From Octopus sinensis (Eukaryota): a stretch of DNA of 46,887 nucleotides. How positions within the stretch are numbered: the first letter of the stretch is position 1; each line of letters begins with the position of its first letter. Under the pieces are notes generated by a model that saw nothing but the letters and a program-made list of their open reading frames with translations, searched no databases and was not told where the DNA came from. This document shows positions 3,460 through 32,690 of this stretch, piece by piece. The translations under genes and the position numbers were made by a program. Location: contig NW_021834618.1 of the NCBI RefSeq assembly GCF_006345805.1, positions 1 through 46,887 on the forward strand. The letters are read 5' to 3'.

Positions 3460-3511
<52 letters not shown>

Positions 3512-3555
3512 ACACACACAAACGCACGCATAAACACACGCGCGCCCGCACACAC

Positions 3556-3609
<54 letters not shown>

Positions 3610-3638
3610 TCATTCTTTATTTGTTTCTGTCATTTGAC

Positions 3639-3897: not shown

Positions 3898-4496
3898 AAT
3901 GCATTAGTTAATGAATCACAGAGGACTGTTTATCTCTACTTGAGAGTATGAAGGCCAATCTAGCTATATAGCTAGCAACTACACATTAATCTGCATGCAA
4001 TTATGCATCCTAGTCGCTGCAATTTCATCAGGGGTCCATCACTTACGACGTTTTCAAAGTGAACTAATTCGAACAAGCTTCCTGCGTTGGTACTCAGATG
4101 AAGGTTATAGCGTTACTTTTAAAATCGAATTGAATTCTGGTCTTATATTCACCTCTACTGGTATTACAGATGGAACGTGGTTTTAAAATGTTTACTTGTA
4201 TTACACTTAATTGAAGGAGTTTGTTTACATTTTACTGTATGGAGTACGTTATCTATTCAGAGGTATTTCACTTATTTGGGGTTTATACCCTCAATTAATA
4301 TCATTGCTATTATTATTATTATTATTATGATGTTTTTTCCTTCTTTCTTCAAATTTTCTTTCGTTTCTCACCGAGTGTTTTCCATACACCTAGGGCAGAG
4401 AAAGGCATTGTATGCATTTCCAGAATACACGCGCAAATTCACAGATAAAATATGTATTTAAAAATTAATAAATAAATAAATTCATGGATGGATGTT

Positions 4497-6181: not shown

Positions 6182-6270
<89 letters not shown>
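6065..6270. repeat. (GATA)n/(GACA)n microsatellite
   Basis: Directly visible. Confidence 0.97.
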
Positions 6271-6400
6271 TGAGTGCGACCGATCCGGAAGTGAGCGAAC
6301 GCATGTTTAGTACTTACCGGATATTTCTGACGTATATATTTACGCCACGTCACTATCAGTGTGGTACCATAGACTGTAAAATATCTCTAAAGGAAAGGAA
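6271..6400 (+). promoter_or_regulatory. Candidate promoter of the galectin-like gene
   Basis: Local CpG enrichment in AT-rich DNA. ETS motif CCGGAAGT (6285-6292), CRE-like TGACGT (6328-6333) and GCCACGTCA (6344-6352; TGACGTGGC on minus), all within 120 bp of an ATG in strong context (gaaATGG). Confidence 0.45.
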
Positions 6401-6517
6401 ATGGAAATCAGCCGATATACTTGTCTATTTTCTCTCCTTCTCCCACTAGTATACAGCATAACCAATAATTCACCTGCAAAAGTGTCTTCCTTTGACCGCG
6501 AAAATTTTTTCTCGCAT
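6401..6517 (+). CDS. Galectin-like exon 1, predicted signal peptide ([39 protein letters not shown])
   Basis: Kozak-like ATG, basic n-region, hydrophobic h-region, donor CAT|GTAAGT in phase 0. Caveat: the h-region is encoded by a pyrimidine tract followed by AGs at 6448-49 and 6455-56, so it could instead be a splice acceptor. Confidence 0.55.
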
Positions 6518-7429
6518 GTAAGTTTTGATATATCAACACTGGATGTAAATAGACTGAATTCTTTTCATTTTAATTCTTATAAATTCTTTTATATATTTCT
6601 AGCTCTGGTTCGGTTTCAGTTATATATATCATATAATATCATAGTAACTGATATGCATAAGATCATTGTGTTTCGGGGTATTCCTTCCCTGTCCTCATTA
6701 CCAATTCATGTCTATATATATATATATATGTACAAAAACGTGCAAACCTATATGCATACACACACGCACAAATATGTATAGAGGCAATTGACAATTATTC
6801 AGACAGACAAATGAGATATATCAAATATTATAGCAGTTCGGATATGAAATACAAAATATGTATATATGTATGCATGCAAAACGAGAGTAACAAAAAAAGT
6901 GGAGAAATTCAGTCAATGAATATTTAACTATAAATACGCAGATATTTAGATTTATAGATCTAACTTACATACAGTAAAAATGACAGACAAAAATTAAAGT
7001 GTCAGGAATAAAGGTTTTATAAATCCAGCAACTATTGGGCGAATAATACCTTTCTTCCAACACTTTAATTTCCTCTGTCGTTTGTTCTCTGTGTAAGTTG
7101 TATCTATTAATATTAATATCTGTATATTTATACTTAAATATTCATAATCTGAAAGTTTCCACTTCGCTTCCTCTCGTTTTGCATGCATACGTATATATAT
7201 ATTTTGTAGGTCATATCAAAATCGTTATATTTAATACTTCTAATTTGTTTATCCACATAACTGCCTCTAAATCTGGTCAACTTTATCACACGTTTAGTCA
7301 TTGCTTACCCCGCGGAGTTGGTTTCCTTTAAATACATCAGAGTGTATGTTTGAATCATTTGAGCTCAACTAAATGTTCTCCAGAGTGAGAATCTCTGGGT
7401 CTCATCTATGGATCACACACACACATACA

Positions 7430-7485
<56 letters not shown>

Positions 7486-9375
7486 CATACTTACATACTT
7501 TCATACATACAGGTACACACACACGCACACAATCACACACACACACACACAATCACACATACACAATCACACTATATATATATATATGTATACACACACA
7601 CACACACACACTCGAGGGGTGGTCATTAAAGATTTCCCTTGACTCACGGTTATTGGCGGATACGGAACTGAAACAGGTCTCGACAAGTAAACATACTTGT
7701 CTCTAGATGTCACATTGTAAATTTCAGCTGTCCACTGGTATTCATTCGACTTTTATGGTTGCTGAAGTGGGCTGGGGTATTATAATGGAGGAAGTTGAAT
7801 GCACAACCGCGATCAGGTTCTTATACTAGAAAGGTCGTACACCAAAATAGATTTTCGATGAAATGAAAGAAGCTTATGGTGATGATGCACCATTCACATG
7901 ACGTAGTCAATCACTGGCATCACTGGATCTCACTCATAAGGTATTGAAATGTTACATTGTGTATAAATTCTATATTTGGATGGAGCCATTTAAAATTCTG
8001 TTGGATTTTACTCATAGGGTGTTGGAAATTTGCATATATACCATTTTGCCTAAAAAATGGATCTATAACTTCAATATTCCTACTTATCTAATATCTATTT
8101 TCTCTTCTCCACCCCACTCCCTATTTTGTATCCTCTCACACCGTCTCCGATGACGGGATATAATTAATAAATATCCTGCAAACAGCTGTAAGACCTTCTA
8201 TCTATAAATGTTCTAATATCTACACAGCCTTGGTTTTTATCTCATTATGCAAAAGATTCTAATATATATATATATGTGTGTGTGTATGTCTGTGTGTGTG
8301 AGTGTGTATGTATGTATGTGTGTCTGTGTGTGTATGTCTGTGTGTGTGTGTGTGTGTGTGAACATGTATGCTACGGCACAGGCATTGATGGTATTTCTAT
8401 TTTATATAGTATGACGGTACCTGTGGCAGCTTGGAACTGAAATCTCCTGAATAAACGTATTTTTTCAAGTTTTGTGATTTCCAACACCTCACTTTGGAAC
8501 TTAGGCAGTTAGCCATGGAGATAAATTTTGCAATGGTTATTGGTAGGAATTCAAATTTATAACCCAGATCGAGCTCCTGAAAATTCCTATTCTATATGGC
8601 ACAGATGTTCTCTTTCTGACTAAGCTAAAATAAAATACGTCGAAAGCTTTTGGGCAAGCCATTTCAACTGCACAACAGTCTCTTCCCCCCCGTCTCTCTC
8701 ATTCTCTCTCTAGATAGATAGATAGAAATATGTCTGTCCTACTTTGTATGTATTCGAGTACATGTTCTTACTATCACTAATTGCCGGTTTAAGTGATCAT
8801 TTCCCTTATATACAATGTTGCATATGAACTGTTCTAAACAATGTGATTAATTTCTCATTGTATTTCTCCAGTAAAATGATATTACTGAAGAGAATATATG
8901 CGTATTTATGGATTCTCGATTGTTACATCATCCACAGCGAGCTAACAGCGTTAGTCGACTGTTTGTAAAAGAGAAACTATATGATTTAATTCATATTCGT
9001 ATGTAAATTTGTACATTATGCACTCTTATACAGCCTTTGCTATGATACACCTGAAAATAAAGACATTTTCTTTCTCAACAGTCGATTAAGAAATTTCTCG
9101 TGTCATCAGAGCCGAGACCAGAACCAATTGTGCATAACATCTCGGACGTAAGTCGTTTTGGGATTTCTATCATTTATTTTAATTAACCATTAATCTAACA
9201 TTTATTATAATTATTTACAATTTGGCTGACAGGTTTCTTTAGCCAGAGTGGTTTGGATGTATTTTTTAAATAAAATTACTAACGCTTATTTATTTTCACT
9301 TTTCTCAGTATTTCAGGTCCAACCTAAATTCATTTTGTTCGGTATTTTACATGCTTACACACACATAATCACAGA

Positions 9376-9444
<69 letters not shown>

Positions 9445-12400
9445 CTCAAGCACACACACACAAACAAACAAATAATTATTTGGACCTTGGGTATATAGTA
9501 TTCTGATTAAAGCACTTTCACAGTTTAGAGTATCTGATGTCATCCACACTTATGATATAAGTGTCAGTGGATCTTTGTCGAGAATTCTGCCGTTTTTGTT
9601 GAGTCTATAATGAATGAGGGGAACGGAAAATGGAGTTTTCAAAAATCATTATTGAAAACAACTATTGTTTCGACCCATCCTGCATCCCTTGCGGATAGGA
9701 CATTGTACATCTAGTTGCGTTGCATCATTAAGTGCAGAGTGCATCTCGTTGGCTGTCTCGTTTTAAATAAGATACTTCGCTAAATATACTTGGTTTCGCT
9801 TGGCATGTTGTAGTCGCCAGTAAGTAGTTGACTATACTGATAGAGGATAGAAACACTTTCCGGGTGATAACCGGTAAATGGCTCTGGCTATATTTCACAG
9901 TGAATACATGACAAAGTAAAGTAATAAAAACCCGGAAACAAAATTAGAAAGGATATGAGTTAAAAGATAAAATGAAGAAAGGTAAGTTTACATATATCTT
10001 GACATGAACACATGAGTACTCCTCGGTCTAAGCTCAGCATGAGAATAGTTGAAATTTGTCCTCATCATTCAATAAAAGCAGATACATTCTGTGTGGAACC
10101 TACAGATGCTGTGGAATATGCAGGCAATAGAGGCCTTCCGTATAGTATTGTCATTGTAGAGATATCAAATAATCGCCCTTTTAACAACGTTCTAAACATA
10201 GTAGTTCAATGTAGAGAGATCAGGAGCATCTGGACATACCATCTGTCATTTCCTCTGTTACACTTTTGGCTTTAGTCAACGTTTATCTAATCAGAGAAGA
10301 ATAAAAGCATAGCATATTCTTGGTTTTTTTAAAACCTTGTTAAGTATGCCTTGGCACAAATCAAACGGTTAATTTGTGCCTTTGCAAATATGAATTGGCC
10401 GCAACTCAGCACAACGAATGTTCTGATAATCCATTCTAACATCTGAAGTTCTTAAGCAGTGGTCCACTTCGATGTTCCCAGTTCGTGAAAAATGCTTTCA
10501 ATCCGTTGGATGAATTGTGGTTTTATATGGTGACCGAAAATTTAGAAGTCTTAGAAGTATTTCTGTTTCCTACAGTTGAAACATTCCCGCCCGATGCTTT
10601 TAATTTTATTGGGACATTGTGTAGAAAAGATCTTGCTACGTTTAGGAAGTTTCCTATTTCTAAATAACTGTGTTCTATAAATGTGGTCACATGACTGCAT
10701 GTCTTTTCACTTTCTGCGTTCTCATTTCATTAACCATGGCAGATTTGAAAGGAAAGGTAAATATTCTATCTTTTAGAGAGATATGACTACATTCAAATTC
10801 CCAGTTCGATTATATTGAGATCACTGGAGCTCACTAAAAACGAACATTTATGCAGAATTTTGGAGCAACAGGAGAGGAGATGCTTCCCTGTCCCATCGTC
10901 GCTTGAAAGAGCTAGATATGTGTTTACTTAAAGAATGACTCAAAATTCCCCTTAAAACATTTCAGAACCTGTTCGGGTCAATTCCTCGACGTATTGTTCA
11001 AGCCCATGTATGTAACTGAACATGTACGCACTGATACAGGAATAGATGGCTGATAAAGGAATGGATGGCATTGCAAATATGAATTATATTTTACATAATT
11101 TGTCACCATTAACGACCAGGAGCCGAAATTTAAATGCAGGTGACATTTTTGGTTTTGTGACTTCCAACTTCTCAGGTGTATTACCGTTACACTTTGGCAC
11201 ACAGTTAATATCTTCAGTAGTTATTAGTACAAATTAAAAAATTTTGCACTTGCAGATTTTTCAAAACCTTTAATATTATGTTGATATCTGCAGGGCAAAT
11301 GATTTCAACTGTATATATAAAGTTCTAAATAACGTGCATAGTTTCTGAAAGTATACCTCCTGTCAAATATTATTACTGAAATGAACGAACTTGTGCTTCA
11401 ATCTTAGAGAGTACTTTCGACTTATATCCAGTAGCAGCATGCTACCAGTGTCAGTAAGGTATTTCTGAAAGAGTAACTATATAATTTAACTCATGAACTT
11501 TTGCGTTTAATTGTCTACAAAAGTTAATTTCTTTCTCAACATATTCTCACGAATTTGAAGCCTGTTCTACCGTCAACAGAATTTCCTTTGGCTAACCGTC
11601 CGGAAGTAAGTTTTTTTTAATATCTTTCCTTTCATTTTGTATGTCACTTTTTATAAATCATCGCAATTTTTCGAAGTTATAAATTTTATAGAAATAAATT
11701 TCGTATCAAGTGATATTCTCTTTCATATTAACATGCTATTACTAACCATTTCATGTGATGGATATGTTATTGAAAAATAAGTATAGTCTATTACAGCTAA
11801 GAAAACACATCACTCTCTTCACTAACATGTTTCTTTCCTTATATTTGGATGTCTTTATTTTTTAAATAAAACTACATATGCTTATTATTTATTTTCCCCT
11901 TTGCCATCACTTGAGGTAATAATTAAATTGATATATTGTTCACTAATTTACAGGATTTGTCACGTTTATCATCCTATCATCATAAATTATATCGACGACA
12001 AAATATTCTTTTCTATTAGGCTCAAGGCCCAAAATTTTGGGGAGGGGGCCAGTCGATTAGATCGACCCCAGTACGCAACAGGTACTTAACTTATCGACCC
12101 TGATAGGATGAAAGGAAAAGTCAAACCACGGTGGAATTTGAACTCAGAACATAGACAGACGAAATACCTATTTCTTTACAGTCCACAAGGGGCTACACAC
12201 AGAAGGGACAAACAAGGACAGACAATCGGATTAAGTCTATTATATCGACCCCAGTGCGTAATTGGTACTTATTTAATCGACCCCGAATGGATGAAACGCA
12301 AAGTTGACCTCGGCGGAATTTAACTCAGAACGTACGGCAGACGAAATACCTATTTCTTTGCTACCCACAAGGGGCTAAACGCAGGGAGAACAAACAAGGA

Positions 12401-15400
12401 TAGACAAACGGATTAAGTCGATTAGATCGATCCCAGTGCATAACTGGTACTTAATTTATCGACCCCGAAAGGCTGAAAGGCAAAGTCGACCTCGGCGGAA
12501 TTTGAACTCAGAACGTAACGGCACGCGAAATACCGCTTAGCATTTCGCCTGGAGTGCTAACGTTTCTTATTTCTTTATTGCCCACAAGTGGCTAAATTTA
12601 GACGGGACAAATTAGGACAGACAAAGGGATTAAATCGATTAGATCGATCCCAGTGCATGACTGGTACTTAATTTATCGATCCCGAGAGGATGAAAGGCAT
12701 AGTCGACCTCGGCGGAATTTGAACTCAGAACGTAACGGCAGACGAAATCCCGCGAAGTATTTCGCCTGTGCATGCTAACGTTTCTGCCATCTCGCCGCCT
12801 TACACCAACGACAAAATACTTATATATAAATATATATACTGGAGAATTTACATTGTACAATATAACTATTTACAGATACTGTAAAAGACAATGTTTGGGT
12901 AACTGGTTGAATTTAATTATTTACGAATAATTTATGATTATTATAAAATAATCGAAGTGCAAAGATCATTTTGGAAAGTATGTCAAACAGACCCACGGAC
13001 GCGATTCAGCAGTATTCGAATTACAGATAAGTATACTGGTGGAAATGTTCAGAATGTCTGCATGAAACTTTCCAGTCGACGGTACTCATCGATGGGCTCG
13101 CAAAGTAAGAAAGCGTACAAGAAGAAGCGTATCATCACAGTTCTTACGGCAAACAGTCGTGAGATATGAATTTCTCAAGTATCCATCGAAATTTCGAGTG
13201 CTGTAATTGATATGAACCGGCCCGAAGTATAGGGTTTTGCTTGTTGTACTTGGCAAGATGAGTGGAAGGTACCCATTTTCTAAGGATAATATTTGGACTG
13301 ATGGTATTACATATAAATGAAAGAGTTCAACTATTCACCATAATTGTTTCTACAAAGGCCTGAGCATTTGCGCATTGTGGAGGAACATCATAATAAAATG
13401 CAAGGCTTACGTTATGGTGAGACTTATCATGAATACGATTAATCGGAACATTCATTTTTCACTCTAACTGGTTCCATTTGCAAAATATGTAATGCAAAGT
13501 ATTGAAGAGGACTTTGAAACTAGAGTTTATTTCCAGGTGTATAGCGCAACTCCACACTGCCATAGTGATGTAATGGTCTATATTGATGAGAGATTGCCAA
13601 GTATGTGGATTGGATGGAGAGGTTCAGTAGAATACACTCCGCGCTTACTGAAGTTCTCACACCGCATGAAATTCAGTGTTAGCTCTCACTGCACACGCAA
13701 CGGTGTGCTATTCGTTGGCGCGCTACAGAACGAATATACGAGATGGTATGACAAAGTCCGTGATCTTTGTCATACCATCTCGTATATTCATTAGATGTGC
13801 CTTTTTTATGTACGGAAAGCAATATCAGTTTGATACTTTGTGTATATTCGAGTACACCATTCTTTTGTCACTATATAAGTATTAGCTGATTTGATTTACC
13901 ATTCTAACCATTCTACTATATATGTAATATGCTCTAAATAACTTGCTTAATTTCTGAGAATGATTTTCGAGTAAAATCATTTTAGAATGTGAACAAACTC
14001 GTGTTTCAATCTTAAAATATATGCTCCGCATCTCCCCAGTGTCACATAAGTGAGAACGTGCTATCATTGTTAGTAAACTTTTCATGATATTATTTTCTTT
14101 GTTTCAATCATTTGACTGTGGCCATGCCGGAGCACCGCCTTAAAGGGCTTTAGTCAAAGAAATCAACCCCATGTCTTATTCTTTGTAAGCCTAGTACTTA
14201 TTATGTTGGTCTCTTTTGCCGAACCGCTAATTTACATAAACTCACCAGCATCTGTTATCAAGTGATGGTGGTGGTAATGGTAGTGTGAGAAACGCAGACA
14301 CACACACACACATACAAACACACACATACATAAAGAAGATATATATATACGACGAGCTTCTTTTGGTTTCCGTCTACTAAACCCACTCACAAGGCTATGG
14401 TCGGCCCGAAACTATAGTAGAAAACACGTCCAATGTGCCACAAAGTGGGACTGAACTCGGAATTATGTGACTGGGAAGATGCTTGTTATTAGCCATACCT
14501 GTGCCTAATAGACTAACTATTGAATTTAATTAATGCCGTTTTGTTCCTTTGGCACTATTTAACCTGTATAAAACGTAAGTTTTGATCTACTTGAAAGCAG
14601 AAGATCATTTTCTTTTCAACAGATTTTGCAGAGCCTATCCGAGAATTTCAATACATCAGGAGGATTTTCAACTGACTTTTATCCTGTAAGACGTTTTTGC
14701 ATTTCTCGTATCTTGTGATATTCCTTTGATATTCTCTTACATGACAAATATCTGCATTAGATTCTAGTGAGATTATGAATCAGAATATATGTGTGTATTT
14801 TTGTATGGCAGAATCGGTGAATCACTAGACACACTTTGTTGTAGCAATTAAAATTTCGTTAGCTCTTTAGTACATTCTGGTTTCAATCCCATTGAACGTT
14901 CGGTTAGATGAAATTCCTACAATAAGACATAGATAGAACTTACTTTAATGAATCGCAATTCATTTTTGTGCAAATTGTACATACAAATATTTATTGGGAT
15001 AAAACCCTAGATGTGGGACAGTGAGCTTACAAAATCTATAAATGCTAATTACAGAAGTCGTGTTCCGATTTGTATTTGAAGTTGTTCCAAAATTTTGGTG
15101 AAAGTTATGAACGCAACCCTTCATTGTTATATTTAACTTGAGAATATGATGCCTTACATCTTTTTAGGAGATCATTCATAAACGTCACTATATTATGGTT
15201 AATAAATGTATGTAAGTCAATAAACATAGTCCTGAATCAAACAAAAGATAAAAAGTGAAAATGACAAACTTTAGGAATATACTTATTATATTGGTGAGAA
15301 TTTATAATTTGACCTGAAGCTTTCTCTGATGTTTTTTCGTGAACACCAGTTACAAATATTTGTGTCATGTGTAAGCTCGTCGAGAGGAAGAGCACAACTA

Positions 15401-21400: not shown

Positions 21401-24400
21401 TTTCAAGAAACCGTGGAAGTGCTTTCAAAATTGTTTTGTGACGGAAGTTCATTATTTAACACAGAATTGTTTGTTGGAACTTAACAAAAAATGAAGATGA
21501 TGATTTTATAACCTACGCCGGAGTAGTCAATCGTATGTACCAAAATCCTGAATCTCACTCACGATATTTTCAAATCACTTATCTTCATGCAAGGACATAT
21601 AGCACATGAAGAGAGAGAGATTCGGACAAAGATTCTCTAAAAAATGGTGCAAGCGACCCGCGATTATTTCTCTACAGACCATCGCAGAAAAATGTCAGAC
21701 TATGGTAAATCTTAAACATGATGAAAAAAGAATACAAAATAAAGACTCTGCAAACATTCAAATGTGTCGTCCCGGGAAGCACAATAAAGTGTCAGGACCC
21801 AATCCGCGTTATGGTTGTGGAAGCCTACAGTACAAAAAAGCTTGTCCGTCTGAAAACAAAAATGTGCTATAGTTGTCAGAAGCTAGGACACAGAAGTTAT
21901 CATTGTAGAACAAAGCTATGAGGCCCAAACAGAAAAAGTTCTTAAATGTTTTAGGCGGATAGTGATCGTGACGGAAAAACACGAAAATTTGTGCACATAA
22001 AACTAAATTATATGAATACCAAATTACAGTTAGACACAGGTAGTGACATCTCGCTTATAAATGCGATTATTTCTCAAAAAATTGGTAAACCTAGGTTACG
22101 TAAAACAGGGAATACTGCGCGTGGTATAACGGGCGATAAATTACATTTCATGGTCAAAACGTATCGACGTCACATTTCGAGGAGCAAAATTATTCGTTGT
22201 GGATAGGACAATCAATCCGTTTGGCATGGATTGGTTAGAATAATTTGATTTATGGCACCTCCCCATAAATCTTTACTGCAATAACATAAATGATTGTTCC
22301 GTTAAAAACAAGTCTTCGGAAGAACTGAAGAAAAAAACTGAGCAAATGTTCCTGCAAATGTTATTTAGGTCTATGTAGAAAGACGGAAACCAACTTCCAA
22401 GTAAGTGAAAACGCTCTAACTATACTTAAAGCAAACAGAAAAGCAAGGCTTTTACTACGCAAGGTAGCTCCTGTTGAACATAAACGTTACTGTAACATTA
22501 TCCTGTCAAAGAGTCGAGCGAAACTGGTTTTCAAGAAACCGTGGAACTGCTTTCAAAATTGTTTTGTGATAGAAGTTCATTATTCAACAAAAGTACTGTT
22601 CGCGGCAATTAAATCCGTAAATAAAGAGTTGGACGGACTGGAAAAGAGTGGAAGCAGCAGAAAGGAGTCACGGTATGTATTTAAAAAAATGATAAGATTA
22701 GGCTGTATGGCGATTTCACTACAGAATTGGACGACTGCTTAAAAACCTACCACCATCCACTCCCGACTACAGAGGACATTTTTTCAAAGTGAAATGGTGT
22801 ATAAAGTTTTTTTCCAAATTAGTTCTGTATGTAGCCTATTTACAGATAAAAGTATATAAAAAATTCTCAAAGTATTTGACAATAATACACACAGAGGATT
22901 GTACAGATATATACGATTACCTTTTAGATTACAAGTGGCACCAGCAATATTCCAGCAAATCATGGATACCATGTTATCTGAGTGTGAATTTGCAATCCTG
23001 TATTCGGACGATATTTTGATCAAGAATAATTTTCGTGAACAGCATGTGGAACACATGAAGATTCTGTTTAAGAAAATGAAAGTTTTCGGGTTCACTTTGG
23101 GTGAAGAAAAATGCGAAATCTTTCTGCTATAAATTAAGTACTTAGGGCAAATAATTGATAAAAGTGGGACCCGTCCTGACCCGTGGAGGGCGGACGCAAT
23201 AATGAATATGCCTGTACCGACAAATATTACAACTTTACAAGAATTTCTTGGGTTGGCAAACTATTATCAAAGCTATATTCCTGTTATGGACAAGTTAAGA
23301 GCTCTATTGAACAATTTATGTTTTTTTAGAAAAAAGGAAATAAAGAGGAATTGGTCCACTAAATGCCTGAACACTTTTGAAGAAATTAAAAATTTCTTAA
23401 TCTCAGACTTGTTAGCAAATTACGATCCTGAAATGGACATCATCGTAGCACCTGATGCATACGAGCACAGATTAGATGCAGTTCTACTTCATAAATACGG
23501 AGACGGAAGTACAAAACCAGTGGATCACGTTTCGCGGTCGCTAACAGCAGCAGAGAAGAGATATTGTCAAATTGAAAAGGATGCCCTTGCAAATATTTTT
23601 GCAGTTAAACATTTCACGGGTTTCTGTGTGGCAGAAGTTTTTTAAAATTACAAATAGACCATAAACCTTTGCTGTCGATTTATGGGTAAAAAAAGGGTTA
23701 CTGATTCATATTGCGAATCGTCTGTAACGTTAAGGTGTAATATTACTAAATTATAATTTCAAAATGCAATACATCCCATCGAAAAGAATCGGTCGAGATT
23801 ATTTCGAAAAAATATGGAACTACTAGAACAAACTGTTATAGCCGCACTGCAGGCAGAAAATGAAATTAAAAGTGTTATGATGAACGTTATCCAAGAACGT
23901 CCAGTGACGGTACAGAATATAAGATTGGAAGCTGTAGATGATGAGTATAATACGAAAATAAAAGAAACTTTAAAACATTAGCAGGATATAAATTCAGAAG
24001 CCATTAGTTTTTCAATTGGCGACGATATTCTGATGTATGCCCAAAGAGTGATGGTTACAAACTAGTGTATTGCAACAATTTCACAACGAACATCCAGGAA
24101 TTGAAATGATGAAGGCTGTGATGAGGAGTTACGTCTACTGGCCGTCTTTGGACCGAGTTATCGAAAACTTGGTGAGAACATGTTGACGTTGGGTGCTCGC
24201 AGCCAAAGCCCCACTTGTAAAATATCAATCCTGGCTAGAGACGGAGAACCCATGGTGTAAGTTTCCCCATGACTATGCAGGACCGGTAAATGGCGAACGA
24301 TTCGGGTTCCTGTTGGTATATGTTTTTATTCATGTGCGCTAACTACAGCATTAGAGAATTTCAACAATTATTTCTAGCAATGTAGGCGTTTCTTAACACC

Positions 24401-25959
24401 CTAGTCGTATTTAGTGACATTAAAATTTTCCTTTTTGGTGAAACATTGCAACTTACCGTTCATGTTAATTTTAAGCATATACATTAAAAAATCGCTAAAT
24501 CATCTACTAATTTGGATGAAAAAAATATATATGTGTAGTAATGGAGAAGCAAATCCATCAAAAGCGAATATCGAGTGGGCTTAATTGATGAGGCAACGGA
24601 AATTGCCCAAACTGACGTCAGTATTAAGAATTCTCGAACGGCATTTTTCGGAAGATTCAGGCCCCTGTTATTGCATATGTTTTCATTCATTTTATCTCAT
24701 ATTTCTAGCAATGTAGGTGTTTCTTAACACTCTAGTCACATTTAGTGAAAATTATAATCCCCCTTTTGAGAAACATTGCAACCTACTGTTTATATATGTG
24801 TAAGTGTGTGTTCCTATATATGCATAAACACATATATATAACTATATGTTTATAAGTATGTATGTATGTGTGTGTCTGTATATATATAATACGAAAAAGA
24901 GATCACATAGGAGAAACAATGGTTATGTTATGATCTGCATTGCCTTACAGCTTTTTCTACTATAAGATGCAGTGGACTTGGAGTTGAGTGGCTGAATAAC
25001 ATCCTGTGGTTTTGTCGGAGCCTCCAATATCAAGTCCAACATATTTAGGAAAATACCAATTACAAATGTAGGCACTGATTAAGATATAGGATATCCAGCC
25101 ACTCAAGTTCGAGTCCTCTGTATCTTATAGTAGAAATAGGTGTAAGGTAATGAAGTTCATAATATAACCATCGTTTCTTCTGTGTTGTCTCTTTTTTGTA
25201 TTATATATATATATATATATATATGAATAAACATATATATAAAATACTTTTATTTAATTTTATTATTTTATAATTATTATATGTGAACTAAAATCTAAAA
25301 GTATTCAGTGTGATTGTTTTGTAAAATAGTTTGCAAAGTAAAATATTAGAGTATAGCTAGTGAAAAGATATTCTATAGTTTATTAATGTTATTCTTAAAG
25401 CTAAATTATATCTTCACAGATAAATAGATATTTGTATCTATTTACTCTATTTTTTACCTTAGGTTTTTAACATGATAAATGTATTATAGCCACCTGGTCC
25501 TACTGTTGAAGTTTCAAATTTAGTTCATGGAGTTTCTTCTATAAGAACAATCATGAGTTAATTTCTTTAAGAAATATTCTTTAATTCTATTAGATTATTT
25601 ATTTAACTCTTATTGTTATTATTGTTGACCTGAGGAGTGACTACTTTTAAATTAAATTTTTTTGCGACTAAATTTAAATTTAATTGTAGCTCGAATTGAA
25701 ATTATTGTCATGAAACGTACGTAGTCTTTTTACTTATTTATTGTTAATTCATTTATGTACTTTTTATGATCTAGTTATTTGTTTTATAATATATTTTATT
25801 TTTTCTTAATGATTTGGTTTATGTCTATCATTCTTTGAATTACATAATAGTGTTTTTTCTCTAATTTATAGATATTATATATTTATATTGTGAAATTTGA
25901 TTTAATACAAAATTGAATTTTTCCTTGTGAGTTTGGAGTTATACTCCCTATTATTATTA

Positions 25960-26017
<58 letters not shown>

Positions 26018-26051
26018 CATTATTATTATAATATATGTAGGTAAATATATA

Positions 26052-26086
<35 letters not shown>

Positions 26087-26248
26087 AAATATATATATAT
26101 ATACATACATACATATATATGTCTGGTTTTCTCTCCCATCCTTCCCTATTCTTCTCCTCTCCCTTCAACGTTCCCTCTCTCTTACTCCTCCTCCTCCTCT
26201 TCCTCCTCGACTCTCTCGTTACTGACACTGGATCAGAGTTATACTCCC

Positions 26249-26318
<70 letters not shown>

Positions 26319-26323
26319 GTAGG

Positions 26324-26421
<98 letters not shown>

Positions 26422-27083
26422 TTTAGAGACAAATCCACTATTTTGTAAATCAAACAAGGAAAGACTTAATCAATACATAAAAAAATTTTAATATAAAGTA
26501 AATAAATCGCCACTACAATTGTTTCCTGTCTTCAAATGACATTCATCAGGTGGATTTCATATCTAAAATATCAATTTTTTAAAAAATAAATTTAAAATGG
26601 CTAAAACTATAAATAATATAAATTTATCAATGAAAAAATATAAAAATATATAATCTATATATAATCTATATATAATCAATATATAATCAATATATAATCA
26701 AGAACTAAAATAACCTCTATAAACAATTGAATATAAAGAAACCTATTATTAAAGTTCTCATATTTAAAGATGAAGAATCTAATTTCAAAAAACAAAAAAC
26801 AAAAATAAAAACTACCAAATACCACATATATACCACCACAATACATTAATACTTAAACCCAACACACACACACACATATACAAATACCACATGCATTAAA
26901 CAAAACATACACAAATACGCAAATAAACACACACACACACAAACTTCCACACATACATATTTTGATTTACAAAATAGTGGTTTTTTCTCTAATTAACATT
27001 ATATAATATTTTACTATAAAATTGGATTCACTCCTAAATCTGATTTTTCTCTGTAAATTTGGATTTATTCCCTAATATTTTAT

Positions 27084-27116
<33 letters not shown>

Positions 27117-27890
27117 ATATATATATATATATATATACATATATACATATATATGTCTGGTTTTCTCTCCCACCCTTCCCTATTCTTCTCCTCTCCCTTC
27201 AACGTTCCCTCTCTCTTACTCCCCCTCCTCTTCCTCCTCGACTCTCTCGTTTCTGACACGGGATCAGAGGGAAGCCATCTTTCCAACTGCTATCTTCACC
27301 AAGATCAGACCACTTATACTAACTCTCTCATACCTTGTCTCCTTTAGCGTTCAGAATAATTTTTTCCATCGTCTTGATTACTTAACAGCCCTCATCGTTT
27401 GTTTTTACTGCGTTATTCTCTTTCTTCAGTCTTTTACTGTCTTGTTTTGTTCTTACTATCCTGTTCTTGTTACCAGTTTAAACCCCTCCGCAAAAAATCC
27501 CAAATTTTATTTAATTTGCTTTGCGGGAAGAACTGTTTCAATGAAGTCACGTCTTGTCCTTACCTTCGAACGCTGAATAGACGAAGCAGATACAACTGAA
27601 GAAGGGGAATATTCTTTGTGCTGTATGTCTTGTACTCTGTTTTTTCGTTGTTTGAAGAAAAAGTTCTTTTCCATGTTTTTGTTTTTGTATTTAAGTTTCT
27701 CATTGTGTTCGACGTATTTTTTTAAGTCTTGTACCCATATATGCATGTATATATACATATAGATGTAGGTGTGCACGTATATGTATGTATATATGCATAT
27801 ATTTATATTATTATATATATATATACATTATACATACATAAAAACATATATCGGAATACACACACACACACAACACACACACACACACCC

Positions 27891-27954
<64 letters not shown>

Positions 27955-28132
27955 ATTAATATACACAACAGGTTGCAATGTTTCCCAAGAACGAGGATTA
28001 TAGTTCATAATATAATCACCGTTTTTCGTGTATCATCTCTTTATTTCGCAATCACTCTATTCCGTCCCAATTTTTGTGTTGAAGCATACGTATATTGAGT
28101 TCTACACCGAGTTATTATATATTCATACATAC

Positions 28133-28179
<47 letters not shown>

Positions 28180-28180
28180 T

Positions 28181-28248
<68 letters not shown>

Positions 28249-29288
28249 CCGAGGATGACATCTAGAAGACTGGTTCTGTTTCATATTTTTAGAAATCATT
28301 AAACAGTTTTTCCAAGTTTTTAAATACGTTTTTACTGGCAAATATTTCAAAAGAAAGAAGGCTGGGAATACCACCTGATGATTCGAAACGTTAACTCAGA
28401 TTCCTGGAATAAGGGGTGACGGTGTGCTTTATGTCTTTATGTACATACATACACAAATGTCTGTGTGTGTGTGTGTGTGCAAATCTGTTTGAGTGTGTAT
28501 ATTTATGTTATATTTTCTTTACAGCTTCACTGTAAATTTGTTGAATGGTGACTATATACCTTTACATATTGATGTCCGCTTTAACTATCTGAGACATTGG
28601 AAACTCGTTGTTTATGACCACTATGACGGTAACTGGCTTAGACAACAAAGAATCACTAAATTTCCATTTTATTGTGATGTCCCATTTCAGATTGTGATAT
28701 ATGTAACTCCATATAACTTCCAGGTATGCTATATTATTTTCTTATTGACTATAGTAAGCGAGGGTGAATTAAAGCTGTTGAATACCGACATTTTGTAAAA
28801 TGAAATTTTTAGTATATGTGATTTGATGAAATTAGTAGTGAACTTAAGATTTGTCAAAGGTTGCATGTTTGTCAGATGGGTTATTAGTAATGATTAAGAA
28901 ATTGAAGTAGATATGAACTGAATATAATCAGTTATATTTATTCCATATTGTATTACATATTTCAAGGATAAAATTGCAAACGTAAAAAAACGAATTGAAT
29001 TGACCGCGTTAAATTCAATGTTTAGATAATGTCAGTCATCATGGCATCTTCTCATCTCAGCAGATAGATTATAAGACAAATATTTCCCATTAATCAGGAT
29101 TTAAAACAATGGGACATACACATAAATACAAAACATCTTTTTCCGTCGAGGGTTTATATGCCCCTACACTGGACTATTTTCTTTAGTCAAAACAGGGTGA
29201 TCGCTTATAAGATTTGAGCTTTAAGATTACAAATTATCGTTATTATTAATAGAATTGTCACTTGTTACTGCTTTTCACTTCATTGCAT

Positions 29289-29338
<50 letters not shown>

Positions 29339-30249
29339 TCAATTTAGGGTAGCAAAAAATTCAATAGAAATTTATCGCTACCAGCGGCCTAGTGGAAAAG
29401 AGAAAATAGTCAAAGACTAAATATATAAATATAACAATTTAGGAGTGACCTTAACAGGCCATTCGTCCACCAGAAAGAGCAGCCATAACTCACACCGCCA
29501 AGTAGTAGTAATTCAGAAATTAGGTGAAAATTTAAAAACATTTACCCTAATTCATCTTTTAGACGATGCATCGTTTCTGTGTTATTAATGATTAAATTAG
29601 CTTAATTAAATTAAATTAAGCTAATCTACCATAGGTCACACTTCATCAGTAAAAAACCTGGGAGAGACAAATATACACGAGGCGTCTGTATCGATGCCTC
29701 CGGAATATCTGTCTTAAAATTTTCAAGACCGACGTATTCGCGCCAAACTTATCAGCAGTAAATATAAACTGCCGATTCAATCTCAGAATTATTCAGAAAA
29801 TTATCAATTAGTCAATTTAGGGTAGCAAAAAATTCAATAGAAATTTATCGCTACCAGCGGCCTAGTGGAAAAGAGAAAATAGTCAAAGACTAAATATATA
29901 AATATAACAATTTAGGAGTGACCTTAACAGGCCATTCGTCCACCAGAAAGAGCAGCCATAACTCACACCACTTCCGGAGGCATCGATACAGACGCCTCGT
30001 GTATATTTGTCTCTCCCAGGTTTTTTACTGATGAAGTGTGACCTATGGTAGATTAGCTTAATTTAATTTAATTAAGCTAATTTAATCATTAATAACACAG
30101 AAACGATGCATCGTCTAAAAGATGAATTAGGGTAAATGTTTTTAAATTTTCACCTAATTTCTGAATTACTACTACTTGGCGGTGTGAGTTATGGCTGCTC
30201 TTTCTGGTGGACGAATGGCCTGTTAAGGTCACTCCTAAATTGTTATATT

Positions 30250-30334
<85 letters not shown>

Positions 30335-30343
30335 ATATATATT

Positions 30344-30390
<47 letters not shown>

Positions 30391-30905
30391 TAAATTAGGC
30401 AAATCAAGCAGTGAAAAACATAAACGAAAACATAAAAATAATATAATTAATATAATATACAAAATAGATAAAATTTAAAATTAAATCATTTAAAATTTTA
30501 AATTTTATATTTATATTTTTTAAATTTCAAATTTATAAATCTTTAAACTTTTAATTTTTAATTTTAAAAAAATAAATAAATAAATATAAATATTAAAAAT
30601 TTAAAGTTTAAAAATTTATAAACTTAAAGAAAATATAAAAAATATATAAAACTTTTAATATATAGAATTTTTAATTTAAATAATTTAATTTTAAATTTTA
30701 TATTTTATATATTTTGTATTTTATATTAATTATATTTATTTTTATCTCTTGATTTATGTTTTTCACCATTTGATTTGCCTAATAGTGGTTTATCTCTAAG
30801 TTAATTTATATTTATACTGTAAAATTTGATTTAATCCTAAATCTAATTTTTGGATTTACTACCTAATATTATATTATTATTATTATATTATTATTATTAT
30901 TATAT

Positions 30906-30948
<43 letters not shown>

Positions 30949-30956
30949 ATATATAT

Positions 30957-31011
<55 letters not shown>

Positions 31012-31812
31012 TCCCAGCACACATCACGTATATTACTGAACGCGAGATGCACGGTGGTATGCACTTGCCCATGAAGGCAGGCGGTGTAACTGGGCAAGTT
31101 GAAGCTTGTAATCAAACTTCATAATTATACATATATACCTACACATGGACTCTGTTATTACATTTGAGTTGCTTTCATTTGCAAGTGTAGTTCATAGAAC
31201 CTTATCAAACTTAGTAAACAGTTCAGATAGTATTTTGTCTTCGGGAGTAAAATCTCATTGACTTCAGCTTACGTAGATTTCTTTGGAAAGTGAAGTTCTT
31301 AGAGGAATAGGGACATATGAAGAATTGCCATTCTGCGAGTGACAAACCTAACGTATTGCCTTCAGGATTACTTGTACTGCTTGATCCCACTTAACGTTCA
31401 ATTTTACCTAAATCTATAAATAGAAATTTTAATCCTTACAAAGTGTTATCAATTGTTGTTTTATATGAATTTTTGAAGAATAGTGCGAGGCGTGTCCAAC
31501 TGATCACGTCTGACTGGATTTTATTTTTCAGCTTCTACTACACCACTTTCCTCAAACTTGCTGGTATGGAGGTCTCGTTTGTTATGGGCTTAAATCTCAA
31601 ATAAAAAGCAATATGTTTCAAATGTCTGATGCTGTTCTTATTATATTGAGAAAAGTTTTGATTTTAAGGAAATTAATTGTAGCTTTTCTCGTACAATTTA
31701 GGTTTATATTAATGGTAATTATAGCCACACCTACGATAATAGAAAGCGTTTCCGAGTGATTCAACTGGACATATTGAAAGAGGTTGAGGTTATTTCCGTG
31801 GAAATTAAGTGA
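6401..31812 (+). CDS. Spliced model of a galectin-fold protein (~224 aa): predicted signal peptide, P/S/T stalk, one CRD; join(6401-6517,9082-9147,11561-11605,14632-14685,19183-19265,28525-28723,31702-31812)
   Basis: All joins are GT-AG and phase-compatible (0,0,0,0,2,0) and the frame is open to TGA at 31810-31812. The last three exons rebuild a galectin CRD. The 5' exons are supported by splice signals and phase only. Confidence 0.62.
7613..7922 (+). mobile_element. Mariner 5' fragment (TIR-like start and transposase HTH)
   Basis: Starts cgaggggtggtcattaaag. ATG at 7785 gives [34 protein letters not shown]. Confidence 0.8.
9082..9147 (+). CDS. Galectin-like exon 2 ([22 protein letters not shown])
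   Basis: ttttctttctcaacAG| acceptor, GAC|GTAAGT donor, 66 nt, phase 0-0, open. Confidence 0.6.
9357..9460. repeat. (CA)n microsatellite
   Basis: Directly visible. Confidence 0.95.
9995..10345 (-). mobile_element. Tc1-like transposase remnant
   Basis: Minus strand: FFSD*INVD...[20 protein letters not shown], resembling FFSDE and WPPNSPDLNPLDYYVW. Confidence 0.55.
11561..11605 (+). CDS. Galectin-like exon 3 ([15 protein letters not shown])
   Basis: Pyrimidine tract then gAAG|, donor GAA|GTAAGT, 45 nt, phase 0-0. Confidence 0.55.
12040..12810 (-). mobile_element. Head-to-tail tetramer of SINE family A
   Basis: Unit anchors 'gattagatcga(c/t)ccc' near 12055, 12239, 12419 and 12637. The tRNA-like head on minus begins near 12800. 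Confidence 0.85.
12900..13660 (+). mobile_element. Decayed Tc1/mariner-superfamily transposase (DUF4817-type N-terminus)
   Basis: [26 protein letters not shown] resembles EVQRRFRREFQTEPPTR..I.RIRDK. Then WTD, HNC, and [20 protein letters not shown] resembling WIGRRGP.EWPPR. Confidence 0.7.
13732..13789. repeat. Perfect 25-bp inverted repeat with 8-nt loop
   Basis: gaatatacgagatggtatgacaaag-tccgtgat-ctttgtcataccatctcgtatattc. Confidence 0.95.
14095..14510 (-). mobile_element. tRNA-derived SINE (family B), diverged copy
   Basis: Homologous along its length to 42041-42492, including the internal (CA)/(TA) tract and the tail ...gtggccatgc(c/t)ggagcaccgcc. Confidence 0.85.
14632..14685 (+). CDS. 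Galectin-like exon 4 ([18 protein letters not shown]; alternative acceptor at 14623 adds ILQ)
   Basis: ttttcttttcaacAG|attttgcAG| tandem acceptors, donor CCT|GTAAGA, phase 0-0. Confidence 0.55.
15470..16040 (+). mobile_element. Decayed mariner transposase
   Basis: [79 protein letters not shown] (WVPH and VTGDEKW motifs). Confidence 0.9.
16560..17120 (-). mobile_element. Probable PLE 5' fragment (ORF N-terminus) with an internal ~90-bp direct repeat
   Basis: ORF 16751..17116 has [20 protein letters not shown], the 'FL..C....iiP' motif at PLE N-termini. 16762-16853 is repeated at ~16990-17085. Confidence 0.55.
17455..17906 (+). mobile_element. Possible non-autonomous Helitron-like element
   Basis: Starts tctatatctataaaa, contains gatcgagctgaaaattggc and ends in CTAG. 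The subterminal hairpin is weak. Confidence 0.3.
18380..18480. repeat. (CATA)n microsatellite
   Basis: Directly visible. Confidence 0.95.
19183..19265 (+). CDS. Galectin-like exon 5, CRD first segment ([28 protein letters not shown])
   Basis: ttctattatttacAG| acceptor, AG|GTAACA donor in phase 2. Gives the galectin spacing 'I.I.G + 8 residues + F' when joined to 28525. Confidence 0.7.
20197..20291 (+). pseudogene. Second galectin first-segment exon with damaged donor ([32 protein letters not shown])
   Basis: Strong acceptor ctttatttctctccAG|. Matches the NP.VPY...I......I.I.G motif. The expected phase-2 boundary is followed by GAGTTC instead of GT. Confidence 0.55.
20681..20971 (+). mobile_element. 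5' LTR of Gypsy element (TGTT...AACA)
   Basis: TG...CA termini with a 4-bp inverted repeat, immediately followed by a PBS. No 3' LTR found. Confidence 0.75.
20974..20986 (+). promoter_or_regulatory. Primer binding site TGGCGACGAGGAT (tRNA-Ser GCU)
   Basis: Complementary to the eukaryotic tRNA-Ser(GCU) 3' end ...AUCCUCGUCGCCA. Starts 3 nt after the LTR end. Confidence 0.8.
24355..24790. repeat. Two ~90-bp diverged direct repeats (24355-24450 and 24702-24790); inverted relative at ~27965-28000
   Basis: tttctagcaatgtagg(c/t)gtttcttaacac...gaaacattgcaac in both. acaggttgcaatgtttcccaag at 27965 is the reverse complement of the 3' part. Confidence 0.8.
24881..25210. mobile_element. Foldback element with ~120-bp imperfect inverted arms, set in (TA)n
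   Basis: 24881-24998 is the approximate reverse complement of 25092-25210 (e.g. ctactataagatgcagtgg / cctctgtatcttatagtag). Confidence 0.8.
25230..25950 (+). mobile_element. E1: ORF-less PLE pseudo-LTR-derived element carrying a hammerhead
   Basis: Homologous to the minus strand of 37239-37600 around the HHR and the end ...aatagtg(g)ttttt(a)tctctaatt. A shared tail ending ccta follows, then (TTA)n. Confidence 0.7.
25627..25726 (+). ncRNA. Type I hammerhead ribozyme (E1)
   Basis: gac-CTGAGGA-g tgac...gtca t-GAAAC-gtac-GTA-gtc. Stem III acgtacgt is palindromic. Predicted cleavage after A25723. Confidence 0.75.
26423..27080. mobile_element. E2: ORF-less element with 32-bp inverted ends, a 3' tail and a minus-strand hammerhead
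   Basis: 26423-26454 ttagagacaaatccactattttgtaaatcaaa versus reverse complement of 26961-26992 (2 mismatches). Flanked by (TA)n. Confidence 0.75.
26506..26557 (-). ncRNA. Compact type I hammerhead ribozyme (E2)
   Basis: Minus strand: aaatccac-CTGATGA-a tgtc atttgaa gaca g-GAAAC-aatt-GTA-gtgg cg attt. Stem III acaattgt is palindromic. Confidence 0.8.
28525..28723 (+). CDS. Galectin-like exon 6, CRD core ([66 protein letters not shown])
   Basis: Galectin signature F.VNL..G..I.LH...RF..VV....G.W....R...FPF....F.I.I.V. Acceptor ttttctttacAG|, donor CAG|GTATGC, phase 2-0 as in galectin genes. Confidence 0.9.
29557..29655 (-). ncRNA. Type I hammerhead ribozyme (E4, minus copy)
   Basis: Reverse complement of the 30022-30120 ribozyme. 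Confidence 0.8.
30022..30120 (+). ncRNA. Type I hammerhead ribozyme (E4, plus copy)
   Basis: tttta-CTGATGA-a gtgt..gattagcttaatt..aattaagctaatt..acac a-GAAAC-gatgcatc-GTC-taaaa. Stem III acgatgcatcgt is a 12-nt palindrome. Predicted cleavage after C30115. Confidence 0.8.
30395..30870. mobile_element. E3: AT-rich foldback element sharing the terminus and tail of E1/E2, no ribozyme seen
   Basis: ttaggcaaatcaa..gtgaaaaacataaa pairs with tttatgtttttcac..ttgatttgcctaa. Then aatagtggtttatctctaa and a tail ending ggatttactacctaatatt. Confidence 0.7.
31702..31812 (+). CDS. Galectin-like exon 7, CRD C-terminus ([36 protein letters not shown])
   Basis: cttttctcgtacaatttAG| in phase 0. Matches the galectin V.VNG.....Y..R....I..L.I..dV.I.SV pattern. 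TGA at 31810-31812. Confidence 0.85.
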   Translation, partial: VYINGNYSHTYDNRKRFRVIQLDILKEVEVISVEIK

Positions 31813-32039: not shown

Positions 32040-32690
32040 CCATTTCGTTTCTCAGTCGCTGCTTACATCACAGCCTCATCCCTAAAGGTTTCCGCTTCCA
32101 TTTTCACCCCACTCTCTAATCTGCTCCAACCATTCTACCCATACTCTGTACTACATCCTATCGCCTTATGCGTGCCACCATTCGCTCTAATCTCTCCAAA
32201 ATACGCACCATCGATCGTCTTCTCCATCTCGCTTGTTCTATCTTCTCATCTCAGTCGCCCTACCATGCCAACACCACATTACGTTGCATAATCCATTTAA
32301 TTCATCTATTTCATCAATTTCTCGCTAACACCGAACAACATAAACTCCACTCATCCTCCATTCCATCACACCCGATGCCACTACCCCAACTCCTCTACTA
32401 CACCTCTCCCTCCCTGATACCCTCCTCCAAACACCCGTCCTTCCAGCCCCAACACATATACCCCCATCTCATCCCTCCCAGCCTTCCCCCATCCCCACCA
32501 ACCCTCTTACTTCTACCCAACCGCTCCTCTTAGTTCTATCCCGTCCACCCCTCCTACTTCTATCCCATCCACCCCCTTCACCACTTCAGTCTGTACTTAC
32601 CATTCCTCTAGATCTTCCCCTCTCTGAGGCAGAGCGCTCCCTCCTTAGTAAGTGTCTGTGCTACATTCCCCTCCCACATGGTTTCCCAAG
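32040..32690 (+). mobile_element. Probable PLE ORF N-terminal fragment
   Basis: C/T-rich L/S/P/T-rich translation ending LSEAERSLLSKCLCYIPLP, resembling the PLE motif LS..E.SVLSKGL.F.P.P. Confidence 0.55.

Follow-up and report, generated by a model that had tools for sequence, protein, structure and literature searches.

By their classical definition, galectins are synthesized in the cytosol and carry no signal peptide (PMC3269628), and all galectins analyzed so far were found to be without one (PMC4671058). The congerins I and II, single-domain galectins from the skin mucus of the conger eel, show accelerated amino acid replacement under positive selection, which has been read as an adaptation for defense (PMC3269628). 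In cnidarians, nematogalectins combine a signal peptide, a collagen-like GlyXY spacer and a C-terminal galactose-type lectin domain, and they enter the secretory pathway (PMC4195985). Here we analyze a stretch of 46,887 nucleotides (nt) from Octopus sinensis (contig NW_021834618.1, forward strand; hereafter the window), for which an earlier note had proposed a hidden seven-exon gene at positions 6401-31812, encoding a galectin-like protein with a signal peptide, a stalk and a single domain. Our results suggest that this region probably contains an octopus gene that is intact and unannotated and encodes a galectin-fold protein with a single domain. Galectins are the textbook case of proteins that lack a signal peptide and leave the cell by unconventional routes, and the innate immunity of cephalopods is poorly charted.

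With the prototype galectins (galectin-1, -2 and -7) and the carbohydrate recognition domain of galectin-3, the octopus protein shares the same beta-sandwich of ~130 residues, and it retains the H, R, W and second R of their sugar site. Unlike the prototype galectins, the octopus gene has a predicted signal peptide, the replacements N->D, N->D and E->Q, a cysteine pair found only in octopus proteins and a mature part that evolves very fast. The congerins, which keep the canonical sugar site, offer the best functional analogy, and congerin II is also a structural match to the octopus model. By the galectin definition of PMC3269628 the congerins have no signal peptide, whereas one is predicted for the octopus gene. 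The octopus acceleration was found between orthologues of two species and measured directly against introns. The nematogalectins are the best architectural analogy; their 'gal-lectin' module may be of the SUEL type and not PF00337, there is no sequence relationship between them and the octopus gene, and the GlyXY spacer is found in the nematogalectins only. GRIFIN and HSPC159 have the galectin fold with substituted sugar contacts, chicken GRIFIN being a good structural match to the octopus model; both are cytosolic and evolve slowly.

A galectin-fold domain with an altered sugar-binding site

The window is AT-rich (~32% G+C), contains many microsatellites and shows no bacterial gene structure. 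A galectin-fold domain is encoded at 19183-31812 by three mutually phase-compatible exons, A, B and C (Table 1). Exons B and C alone match the Pfam family Gal-bind_lectin (PF00337) at 60.5 bits, the cut-off being 22.1 bits. Exon A, which has a good acceptor and donor, was recovered when the N-terminal strands still missing were sought with a sequence pattern, and its inclusion raised the score to 78.3 bits (E 4.8e-22) over profile positions 12-132 of 132. In a sequence search of the PDB, the domain of 130 amino acids (aa) retrieved 152 galectin chains at E<=0.01, with galectin-8 and galectin-3 as the top matches (E 7e-18 to 1e-11). An AlphaFold model of the 169-aa protein, computed from an alignment without the reconstructed O. 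vulgaris protein described below, has a block-mean predicted local distance difference test score of >=87 for residues 51-169 and a predicted template modeling score of 0.78. Foldseek superimposed this model on the domains of galectin-3 and galectin-8N with target-normalised template modeling (TM) scores of 0.79-0.88 and root-mean-square deviations of 1.5-2.0 A, the best fit (1.5 A) being that to the galectin-3 domain. By both sequence and fold the domain is thus a member of the galectin family, and the galectin-like fold that had been proposed was borne out by the HMMER and structure-prediction checks suggested along with it.

The domain is divided among three exons, one boundary lying immediately 5' of the segment for the 'F-x-V-N-L' strand, as is presumably the case in the vertebrate LGALS genes. 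Exon A starts in phase 0 and has no in-frame ATG, so that an upstream exon is required. No second galectin domain, as in tandem-repeat galectins, was found by tblastn on either strand of the window. As a separate observation from the database searches, giant eel and conger proteins with 18-25 galectin domains are present in Anguilla anguilla (XP_035239585.1, 3214 aa) and Conger conger (KAJ8256622.1, 3840 aa), and a moray eel protein (KAJ8273427.1) joins an N-terminal membrane anchor to a single galectin domain.

Table 1. Features of the octopus gene in the window; slashes mark splice junctions
Feature	Position	Strand	Description
TATA-like motif TATATTTA	6335-6342	+	~60 nt 5' of ATG; kept in O. 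vulgaris; possible core promoter
Exon 1	6401-6517	+	39 aa, ends in phase 0; ATG context AAGGAAATGG; donor CAT/GTAAGT at 6518, score 8.6
Predicted signal peptide	6401-6457	+	19 residues, cleavage predicted after VYS
Hypervariable N-terminal stretch of the predicted mature protein	6458-6517	+	3' part of exon 1
Cassette unit c2	8936-9176	+	decayed copy of signal-peptide exon plus exon 9082-9147 (66 nt); acceptor ttctttctcaacag/, donor GAC/gtaagtcg; nhmmer E 6e-56
Cassette unit with dead acceptor	11436-11631	+	relic exon 11543-11605; donor GAA/gtaagttt; nhmmer E 2.8e-37
Cassette unit c3	14481-14713	+	exon 14623-14685 (63 nt); acceptor ttcttttcaacag/, donor CCT/gtaagacg; nhmmer E 1.4e-52
Galectin-domain exon A	19183-19265	+	27 aa + 2 nt, N-terminal strands; acceptor tttacag/, donor CAG/gtaaca
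Galectin-domain exon B	28525-28723	+	1 nt + 66 aa; sugar-site strands LHIDVRF...VVYD...GNWLRQQR...FPFYCDVPF
Galectin-domain exon C	31702-31812	+	36 aa, then TGA at 31810-31812
Poly(A) signal AATAAA	31944-31949	+	132 nt 3' of stop codon; same offset (134 nt) in O. vulgaris

The sugar contacts of galectin-3 (H158, N160, R162, N174, W181, E184 and R186) correspond to H81, D83, R85, D98, W104, Q107 and R109 in the octopus protein; four of the seven residues of the canonical motif H-x-N-x-R, N, W-x-x-E-x-R are kept. Among 458 related domains HNRNWER was the commonest pattern (150 domains), and the octopus pattern HDRDWQR was found in none. D at the second N occurred in 4 of these domains and Q in place of E in 10, and a multi-domain protein of Meloidogyne has independently combined the D and Q swaps. 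All seven site residues are identical in O. sinensis and O. vulgaris, although 62 of the 130 domain residues (48%) differ between the two species (chance P ~0.011), and residues 77-120 are less often replaced than the rest of the domain (15/44 vs. 47/86, P 0.04). The conservation of the altered site amid fast change argues for a site that is retained but retuned, unlike those of GRIFIN and HSPC159. Likewise, the isosteric and charge-neutral combination of N->D with E->Q suggests a site that still works in a modified form and is not dead, and the conserved replacements point to a ligand specificity different from the usual one; the glycan specificity is probably altered. Galectins in the strict sense have the canonical motif, bind beta-galactosides independently of calcium and carry no signal peptide; for the octopus protein, with its altered motif, its possibly changed binding and its predicted signal peptide, 'galectin-like' is the right label. 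Two cysteines, C65 and C117, are common only to three octopus proteins and may be linked by a disulphide, as would be fitting for a protein outside the cell.

Divergence from the Octopus vulgaris orthologue

When 1.84 billion representative proteins were searched exhaustively and without a profile, the hits were ordinary galectins at 23-35% identity and only two closer relatives, both from octopus. One, CAI9729906.1, is an O. vulgaris model of 83 aa (58% identical), and the other, XP_052827821.1 (LOC128249093), is an O. bimaculoides protein of 131 aa (33% identical). Word-indexed searches with a 102-aa fragment of the domain, with an alignment of the octopus relatives and with cassette peptides of O. 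bimaculoides returned either nothing or two octopus proteins only, and the collection contains no full-length model with RNA support. The suggestion that the protein is lineage-specific agrees with this result, and the homolog search that had been recommended yielded an orthologous locus in O. vulgaris and a paralogue in O. bimaculoides. The paralogue, XP_052827821.1, has the same three domain exons and the same cysteine pair, and a cassette unit (see below) serves as its first coding exon. It differs from the window gene in that its model has no signal peptide, the W-containing part of the sugar site is lost and the identity is ~33%.

The O. vulgaris locus (OX597824.1:30986262-31015924, 29.7 kb; L001) is colinear with window positions 5490-40909 at 87-95% identity, introns and an embedded retroelement included, and thus represents the orthologous locus of a closely related species. 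CAI9729906.1 is a mis-spliced fragment of the gene at this locus: it starts at an internal ATG in the first domain exon, uses a false donor in the second and ends in a spurious exon (19607-19660 of L001). The true exons, at 887-1000, 9986-10068, 17097-17295 and 19417-19527 of L001, encode an intact protein of 168 aa. The corresponding frame of the window, made up of exon 1 and exons A-C, encodes 169 aa, and the ATG, the six splice sites, the TGA and the AATAAA are kept in both species. This comparison indicates that the version of the gene shared with O. vulgaris is the one with four exons and not one with seven.

Outside the exons, the two loci differ at 6.15% of 20,622 aligned sites (~94% identity), while the domain exons differ at 22.9% (90/393; binomial P 2e-27 vs. 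introns), roughly four times as much, and the two proteins are only 54% identical. By the Nei-Gojobori method the rate of replacement changes (dN) was 0.299 and that of silent changes (dS) 0.107, giving an omega (dN/dS) of 2.8, with ~3 for the mature part; replacement and silent changes differed significantly (Fisher P 6e-4). This ratio comes from a single species pair with just 11 synonymous differences, which weakens it as support for positive selection. Sliding-window identity fell below 80% only at the 3' part of exon 1, the three domain exons, microsatellites and one edge of an alignment block, with minima of 0.63 in exon A, recorded as the deepest dip of the locus, and 0.62 inside exon C. 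In base-level alignments the divergence begins after each acceptor AG and ends at the donor GT or at the stop codon. The sole coding indel is 3 nt long and in frame, and the lack of stops and frameshifts together with this in-frame indel argues that the gene is functional in both species.

The excess of exon divergence could also have arisen by gene conversion from paralogues or by the decay of a pseudogene. Possible donors for conversion are present in O. bimaculoides, where a tandem array of paralogues comprises at least two genes and further cassette units within 30 kb, and the truncated 83-aa annotation of the O. vulgaris locus would fit decay. However, the truncation reflects mis-splicing, with the true exons intact, and conversion tracts ignore exon borders, whereas the divergence halts at the splice sites in all four exons. 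Either process would raise both dN and dS or leave the copy at the neutral rate, but dS (0.107) is near the intron value of 0.064 while dN (0.30) is several-fold higher, a pattern that positive selection explains better. In addition, stops and frameshifts are absent from both species, while only 1.6% of neutral simulations with an equal number of substitutions were free of stops. Conversion and decay are therefore highly improbable, and the sequence comparison indicates a live gene under diversifying selection.

The first exon and its cassette copies

Upstream of the domain, 44 first-exon candidates combine an ATG with a phase-0 donor, and two of the 44 are signal-peptide-like. By splice score and enumeration of open reading frames (ORFs) alone, exon 1 and the middle exons of the earlier note ranked high but were not statistically exceptional, and this criterion was rejected as sole evidence. 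Compared with O. vulgaris, positions 6401-6463 carry 3 substitutions in 63 sites, with the ATG, the open frame and the donor all kept, while positions 6464-6517 carry 14 in 51 and one in-frame 3-nt indel (P=1.6e-6). The segment 6262-6463, comprising the upstream region, the ATG and the codons for MEISRYT[C/S]LFSLLL[P/L]LVYSIT, differs very little between O. sinensis and O. vulgaris, and intron-level identity returns exactly at the conserved GTAAGT of exon 1. Since this pattern is that of the domain exons and ends at the GTAAGT, 6464-6517 is coding sequence and 6518 a true donor. The upstream part 6262-6400 taken by itself (4/139 substitutions vs. 6.15% in introns, P=0.066) is not significantly conserved. 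Exon 1 is tied to the galectin exons by compatible phases and by the shared signature of selection, from which we infer that it is spliced to them.

The putative leader has the n/h/c layout of a signal peptide, with a short polar start, a hydrophobic core of 13 residues whose Kyte-Doolittle values average 2.6, and V-Y-S ahead of the cleavage point that is predicted. Its residues are conserved in O. vulgaris, while those that follow the cleavage point diverge fast, and omega for the signal codons 1-21 is 0.68. Secreted proteins under diversifying selection usually show this combination of a conserved leader and a hypervariable mature part. Several points weigh against the leader: it was assessed by hydropathy and the -3/-1 rule only; the pyrimidine stretch that encodes it, ...TTTTCTCTCCTTCTCCCACTAG/TATACAG/, could equally well act as an acceptor, with the exon starting at 6450 or 6457; the conservation of this stretch (3/63) is no higher than in introns and does not by itself prove coding; and the model of the nearest annotated paralogue, the 131-aa protein of O. 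bimaculoides, has no signal peptide.

These points would agree with an ordinary cytosolic prototype galectin, in which 6401-6449 still belongs to an intron as its last part, the exon starts at 6450 or 6457 or a first exon lies elsewhere, for instance at one of the other candidates upstream, and the 'signal peptide' is a translated polypyrimidine tract. Such tracts translate into signal-like peptides rich in L, F, S and P, the tract with CACTAG/TATACAG/ resembles real acceptors of the same gene, and galectins are described as being without signal peptides (PMC3269628, PMC4671058). However, the ATG, its A-3/G+4 context and the frame of 39 codons are intact in both species, and among eight homologous units at three loci only the first one has an ATG with an open leader, the others having lost the start or carrying stop codons. 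Moreover, the five codons after 6450 are unchanged, while the other three exons diverge within their first two codons, and this fits a constrained cleavage site better than the start of an exon. The hydrophobic core combined with the V-x-S motif also speaks against a cytosolic protein, which we regard as quite unlikely. Thus the leader that had been proposed is encoded by the only compatible first exon that is intact, and it is conserved in two species with the layout of a signal peptide; although the same stretch may instead be an acceptor, we consider it quite probably a cleavable signal peptide.

Comparison with the O. bimaculoides locus (CM046611.1:55631031-55660613, reversed; L002) revealed a repeat unit of ~240 bp, of which the first intron of the window (12.7 kb) holds three further copies (Table 1). 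Other copies are located at 5360-5592 of L001, together with a truncated one, and at 19-262, 3379-3616, 9801-10047 and 28428-28621 of L002, together with a partial one. Each unit includes a conserved pyrimidine tract with the acceptor ttctttctcaacag, an exon and a donor of the type GTAAGTCG. Five of the eight exons measure 63 nt and the others 60, 66 and 72 nt, so that every length is a multiple of 3; seven of the eight are open, and in most copies stops are found 5-9 codons 5' of the conserved acceptor. Open frames, lengths divisible by three and stops that lie outside the acceptor are the behavior of real symmetric coding exons. The c2 exon and the first coding exon of XP_052827821.1 are homologous, and in the latter gene a phase 0-0 exon of 27 nt comes next, ahead of the three domain exons; a homologue of the 27-nt exon was sought in the window and none was found inside the gene.

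The sequence 5' of the cassette exons is a decayed signal-peptide exon, for example VEFNSYSVAFLFSIPLVYS* in L002, and a profile of this region built without the exon-1 rows matches the exon-1 units of O. vulgaris (E 1e-4) and of the window (E 1e-3). This homology indicates that the cassettes were born by tandem duplication of the 5' exon region, which ties exon 1 evolutionarily to the galectin-like gene family and makes the cassettes a small, neat case of exon birth. In O. bimaculoides, the tandem array contains an annotated 131-aa gene that reads through a cassette exon and terminates at 3617 of L002, XP_052827821.1 occupies 10001-19583, and the unit at 28428-28621 presumably starts the next gene.

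In the window the splice signals and open frames of c2 and c3 are intact, while the ancestral acceptor of the unit at 11436-11631 now reads CAACAT, its frame still being open. In O. vulgaris the c2 exon is deleted, with the first 70 positions of the unit remaining at 3556-3625 of L001, in c3 the donor GT is gone and a TAA interrupts the frame, and the region 11436-11631 is missing from the colinear alignment. The c3 exon differs at 11 of 63 sites, compared with ~5.5% in its alignment block (P=6e-4). As the O. vulgaris orthologue is intact without them, the cassettes are evolutionarily dispensable. The c2 and c3 exons may serve as optional linker exons that extend the protein to up to 212 aa, and we lean slightly toward the use of at least one cassette in some transcripts.

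Window positions 9008-13755 (4.7 kb) have no colinear counterpart in O. vulgaris, where ~1 kb (3627-4638 of L001) is found instead. The stretch holds two cassette units and an array of short interspersed nuclear elements (SINEs), the break falls inside c2, and the difference is most likely a deletion in O. vulgaris. The SINE-like repeat of ~180-220 bp forms four tandem copies at 12051-12801 and is also present at 1745-2180 and 45172-45607 of the window, at 4314-4552 of L001 and at 29142-29360 of L002.

The seven-exon model could be reproduced by placing 9082-9147, 11561-11605 and 14623-14685 between exon 1 and exons A-C. All seven pieces are open and phase-compatible, and the product of 227 aa carries exactly the four sequons listed in the earlier note (NNS, NIS, NTS and NYS). 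If such an mRNA were constitutive, it would encode a signal peptide, a glycosylated stalk of 78 aa and the galectin domain. In favor of this view, the splice scores of 9082-9147 and 14623-14685 equal those of proven exons, the cassette family keeps frame and splice signals across paralogues, N-x-S/T occurs in four of seven cassette peptides, and the annotated O. bimaculoides paralogue has its own short phase 0-0 exon. On the other hand, the O. vulgaris cassettes are deleted or dead while the gene is intact, indicating that the stalk is not essential. The middle exon 11561-11605 depends on a cryptic AG that is in frame but has a poor tract of pyrimidines (acceptor score -4.7), the acceptor shared by the family being mutated to AT. 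Phase 0-0 'exons' of equal splice quality occur ~0.5 times per 12.7 kb of control sequence, so that by splice and ORF criteria the middle exons are not above chance. A constitutive seven-exon mRNA is thus unlikely.

The linker of the seven-exon model consists of P, S, T or E at only 41% of its residues and contains no mucin-like or other peptide repeats. A long, repeat-bearing stalk rich in Pro, Ser and Thr, as in mucin-stalked secreted lectins, is therefore absent even from the longest model, and collagen-like GlyXY repeats were found in no gene model. A filter for exons of P/S/T/E-rich composition did not single out the middle exons, because the 'stalk' is not strongly rich in these residues. 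The conserved gene has only ~20 linker residues between leader and domain, and the O. vulgaris orthologue cannot make a stalk. Of the original seven-exon proposal, exon 1 and the three domain exons were confirmed, and two of the three middle exons proved to be members of the cassette family. The ~75-aa P/S/T/E-rich stalk was not upheld, and the seven-exon form is at most an optional isoform. The altered sugar site, the strong diversifying selection and the birth of the cassettes from duplicated signal-peptide exons go beyond what that proposal had noted. Another candidate exon, at 18089-18169 with the best donor of the intron, was rejected as its acceptor AG is CG in O. vulgaris, where it also contains an in-frame TAG and diverges at the neutral rate.

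Proposed role and surrounding repeats

In the mechanism that we propose, transcription would start near 6370, downstream of the TATA-like motif, and splicing would join exon 1 to the domain exons, either directly or through cassettes. Its leader would take the protein into the endoplasmic reticulum and the classical secretory pathway and be cleaved after S19, releasing a mature lectin of ~150 aa, or ~190 aa with cassettes. The surface of this protein would be engaged in an arms race while its ligand pocket stays fixed. Rate signatures of this kind are typical of molecules in conflicts between host and pathogen, predator and prey, or gametes. The contrast is unusually clean here, with 6% divergence in introns, 23% in coding sequence, borders at the splice sites and a dN/dS of ~3. 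The gene most likely encodes an extracellular recognition lectin in such a setting, which could act in the defense of mucus or hemolymph, in saliva or in reproduction. The paralogues arranged in tandem in O. bimaculoides are consistent with a defense-type family that is expanding.

Three further observations speak against an intact gene for a secreted lectin of this kind. The window protein is absent from all protein collections searched, the N-glycosylation sequons do not keep their positions from one species to the other, and with three of the seven canonical residues replaced, carbohydrate binding may be altered or lost. A wider interpretation would be a lineage-specific tandem family of classically secreted galectin-fold proteins, with a diversifying mature part, a fixed D/D/Q site and linkers derived from duplicated signal exons, that forms a previously undescribed extracellular recognition system in immunity, saliva or reproduction. 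We advance it tentatively, with slightly less than even confidence. A galectin-fold protein with an acquired classical leader, as predicted here, would be a natural experiment on the rule that galectins are leaderless. Current octopus annotations either lack the gene or model it wrongly, so that surveys of transcriptomes and proteomes cannot see it.

At its two ends the window carries the same sequence in direct orientation (16-3384 vs. 43469-46809, 3.4 kb, 97.2% identity), and the similarity resumes after a microsatellite (4066-4148 vs. 46806-46887). Either a large mobile element is present here twice, or the repeats mark the edge of a segmental duplication of ~43.4 kb, which would put another copy of the gene just beyond the window. 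The minus-strand ORFs of these repeats, 2760-3215 and 46185-46640, have no Pfam match. At E<=0.01 the same holds for the ORFs 15626-15814, 15741-15938 and 32344-32706 on the plus strand and 40245-40745, 41572-42048 and 2760-3215 on the minus strand. Labels of mariner-type transposase and of Penelope-like reverse transcriptase with endonuclease, given to the ORFs at 15626-16116 (+) and 40245-43097 (-), were not confirmed by Pfam, the test of the latter region covering its ORFs 40245-40745 and 41572-42048.

Positions 29334-30256, in the intron between exons B and C, hold perfect repeats (100% identity), with 29421-29705 inverted relative to 30256-29972 and 29334-29496 in direct orientation with 29807-29969. 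The O. vulgaris alignment breaks across 29318-30295, and the structure is a foldback element or an assembly artefact. The intron between exons A and B contains, at 21200-24400 (+), a fragmented gag/pol region of a long terminal repeat retrotransposon with RVT_1 (22860-23129) and RT_RNaseH_2 (23133-23642) domains, frameshifts and an internal duplication (21318-21461 ~ 22445-22589). This element is common to O. vulgaris at 90-94% identity and is thus an old insertion.

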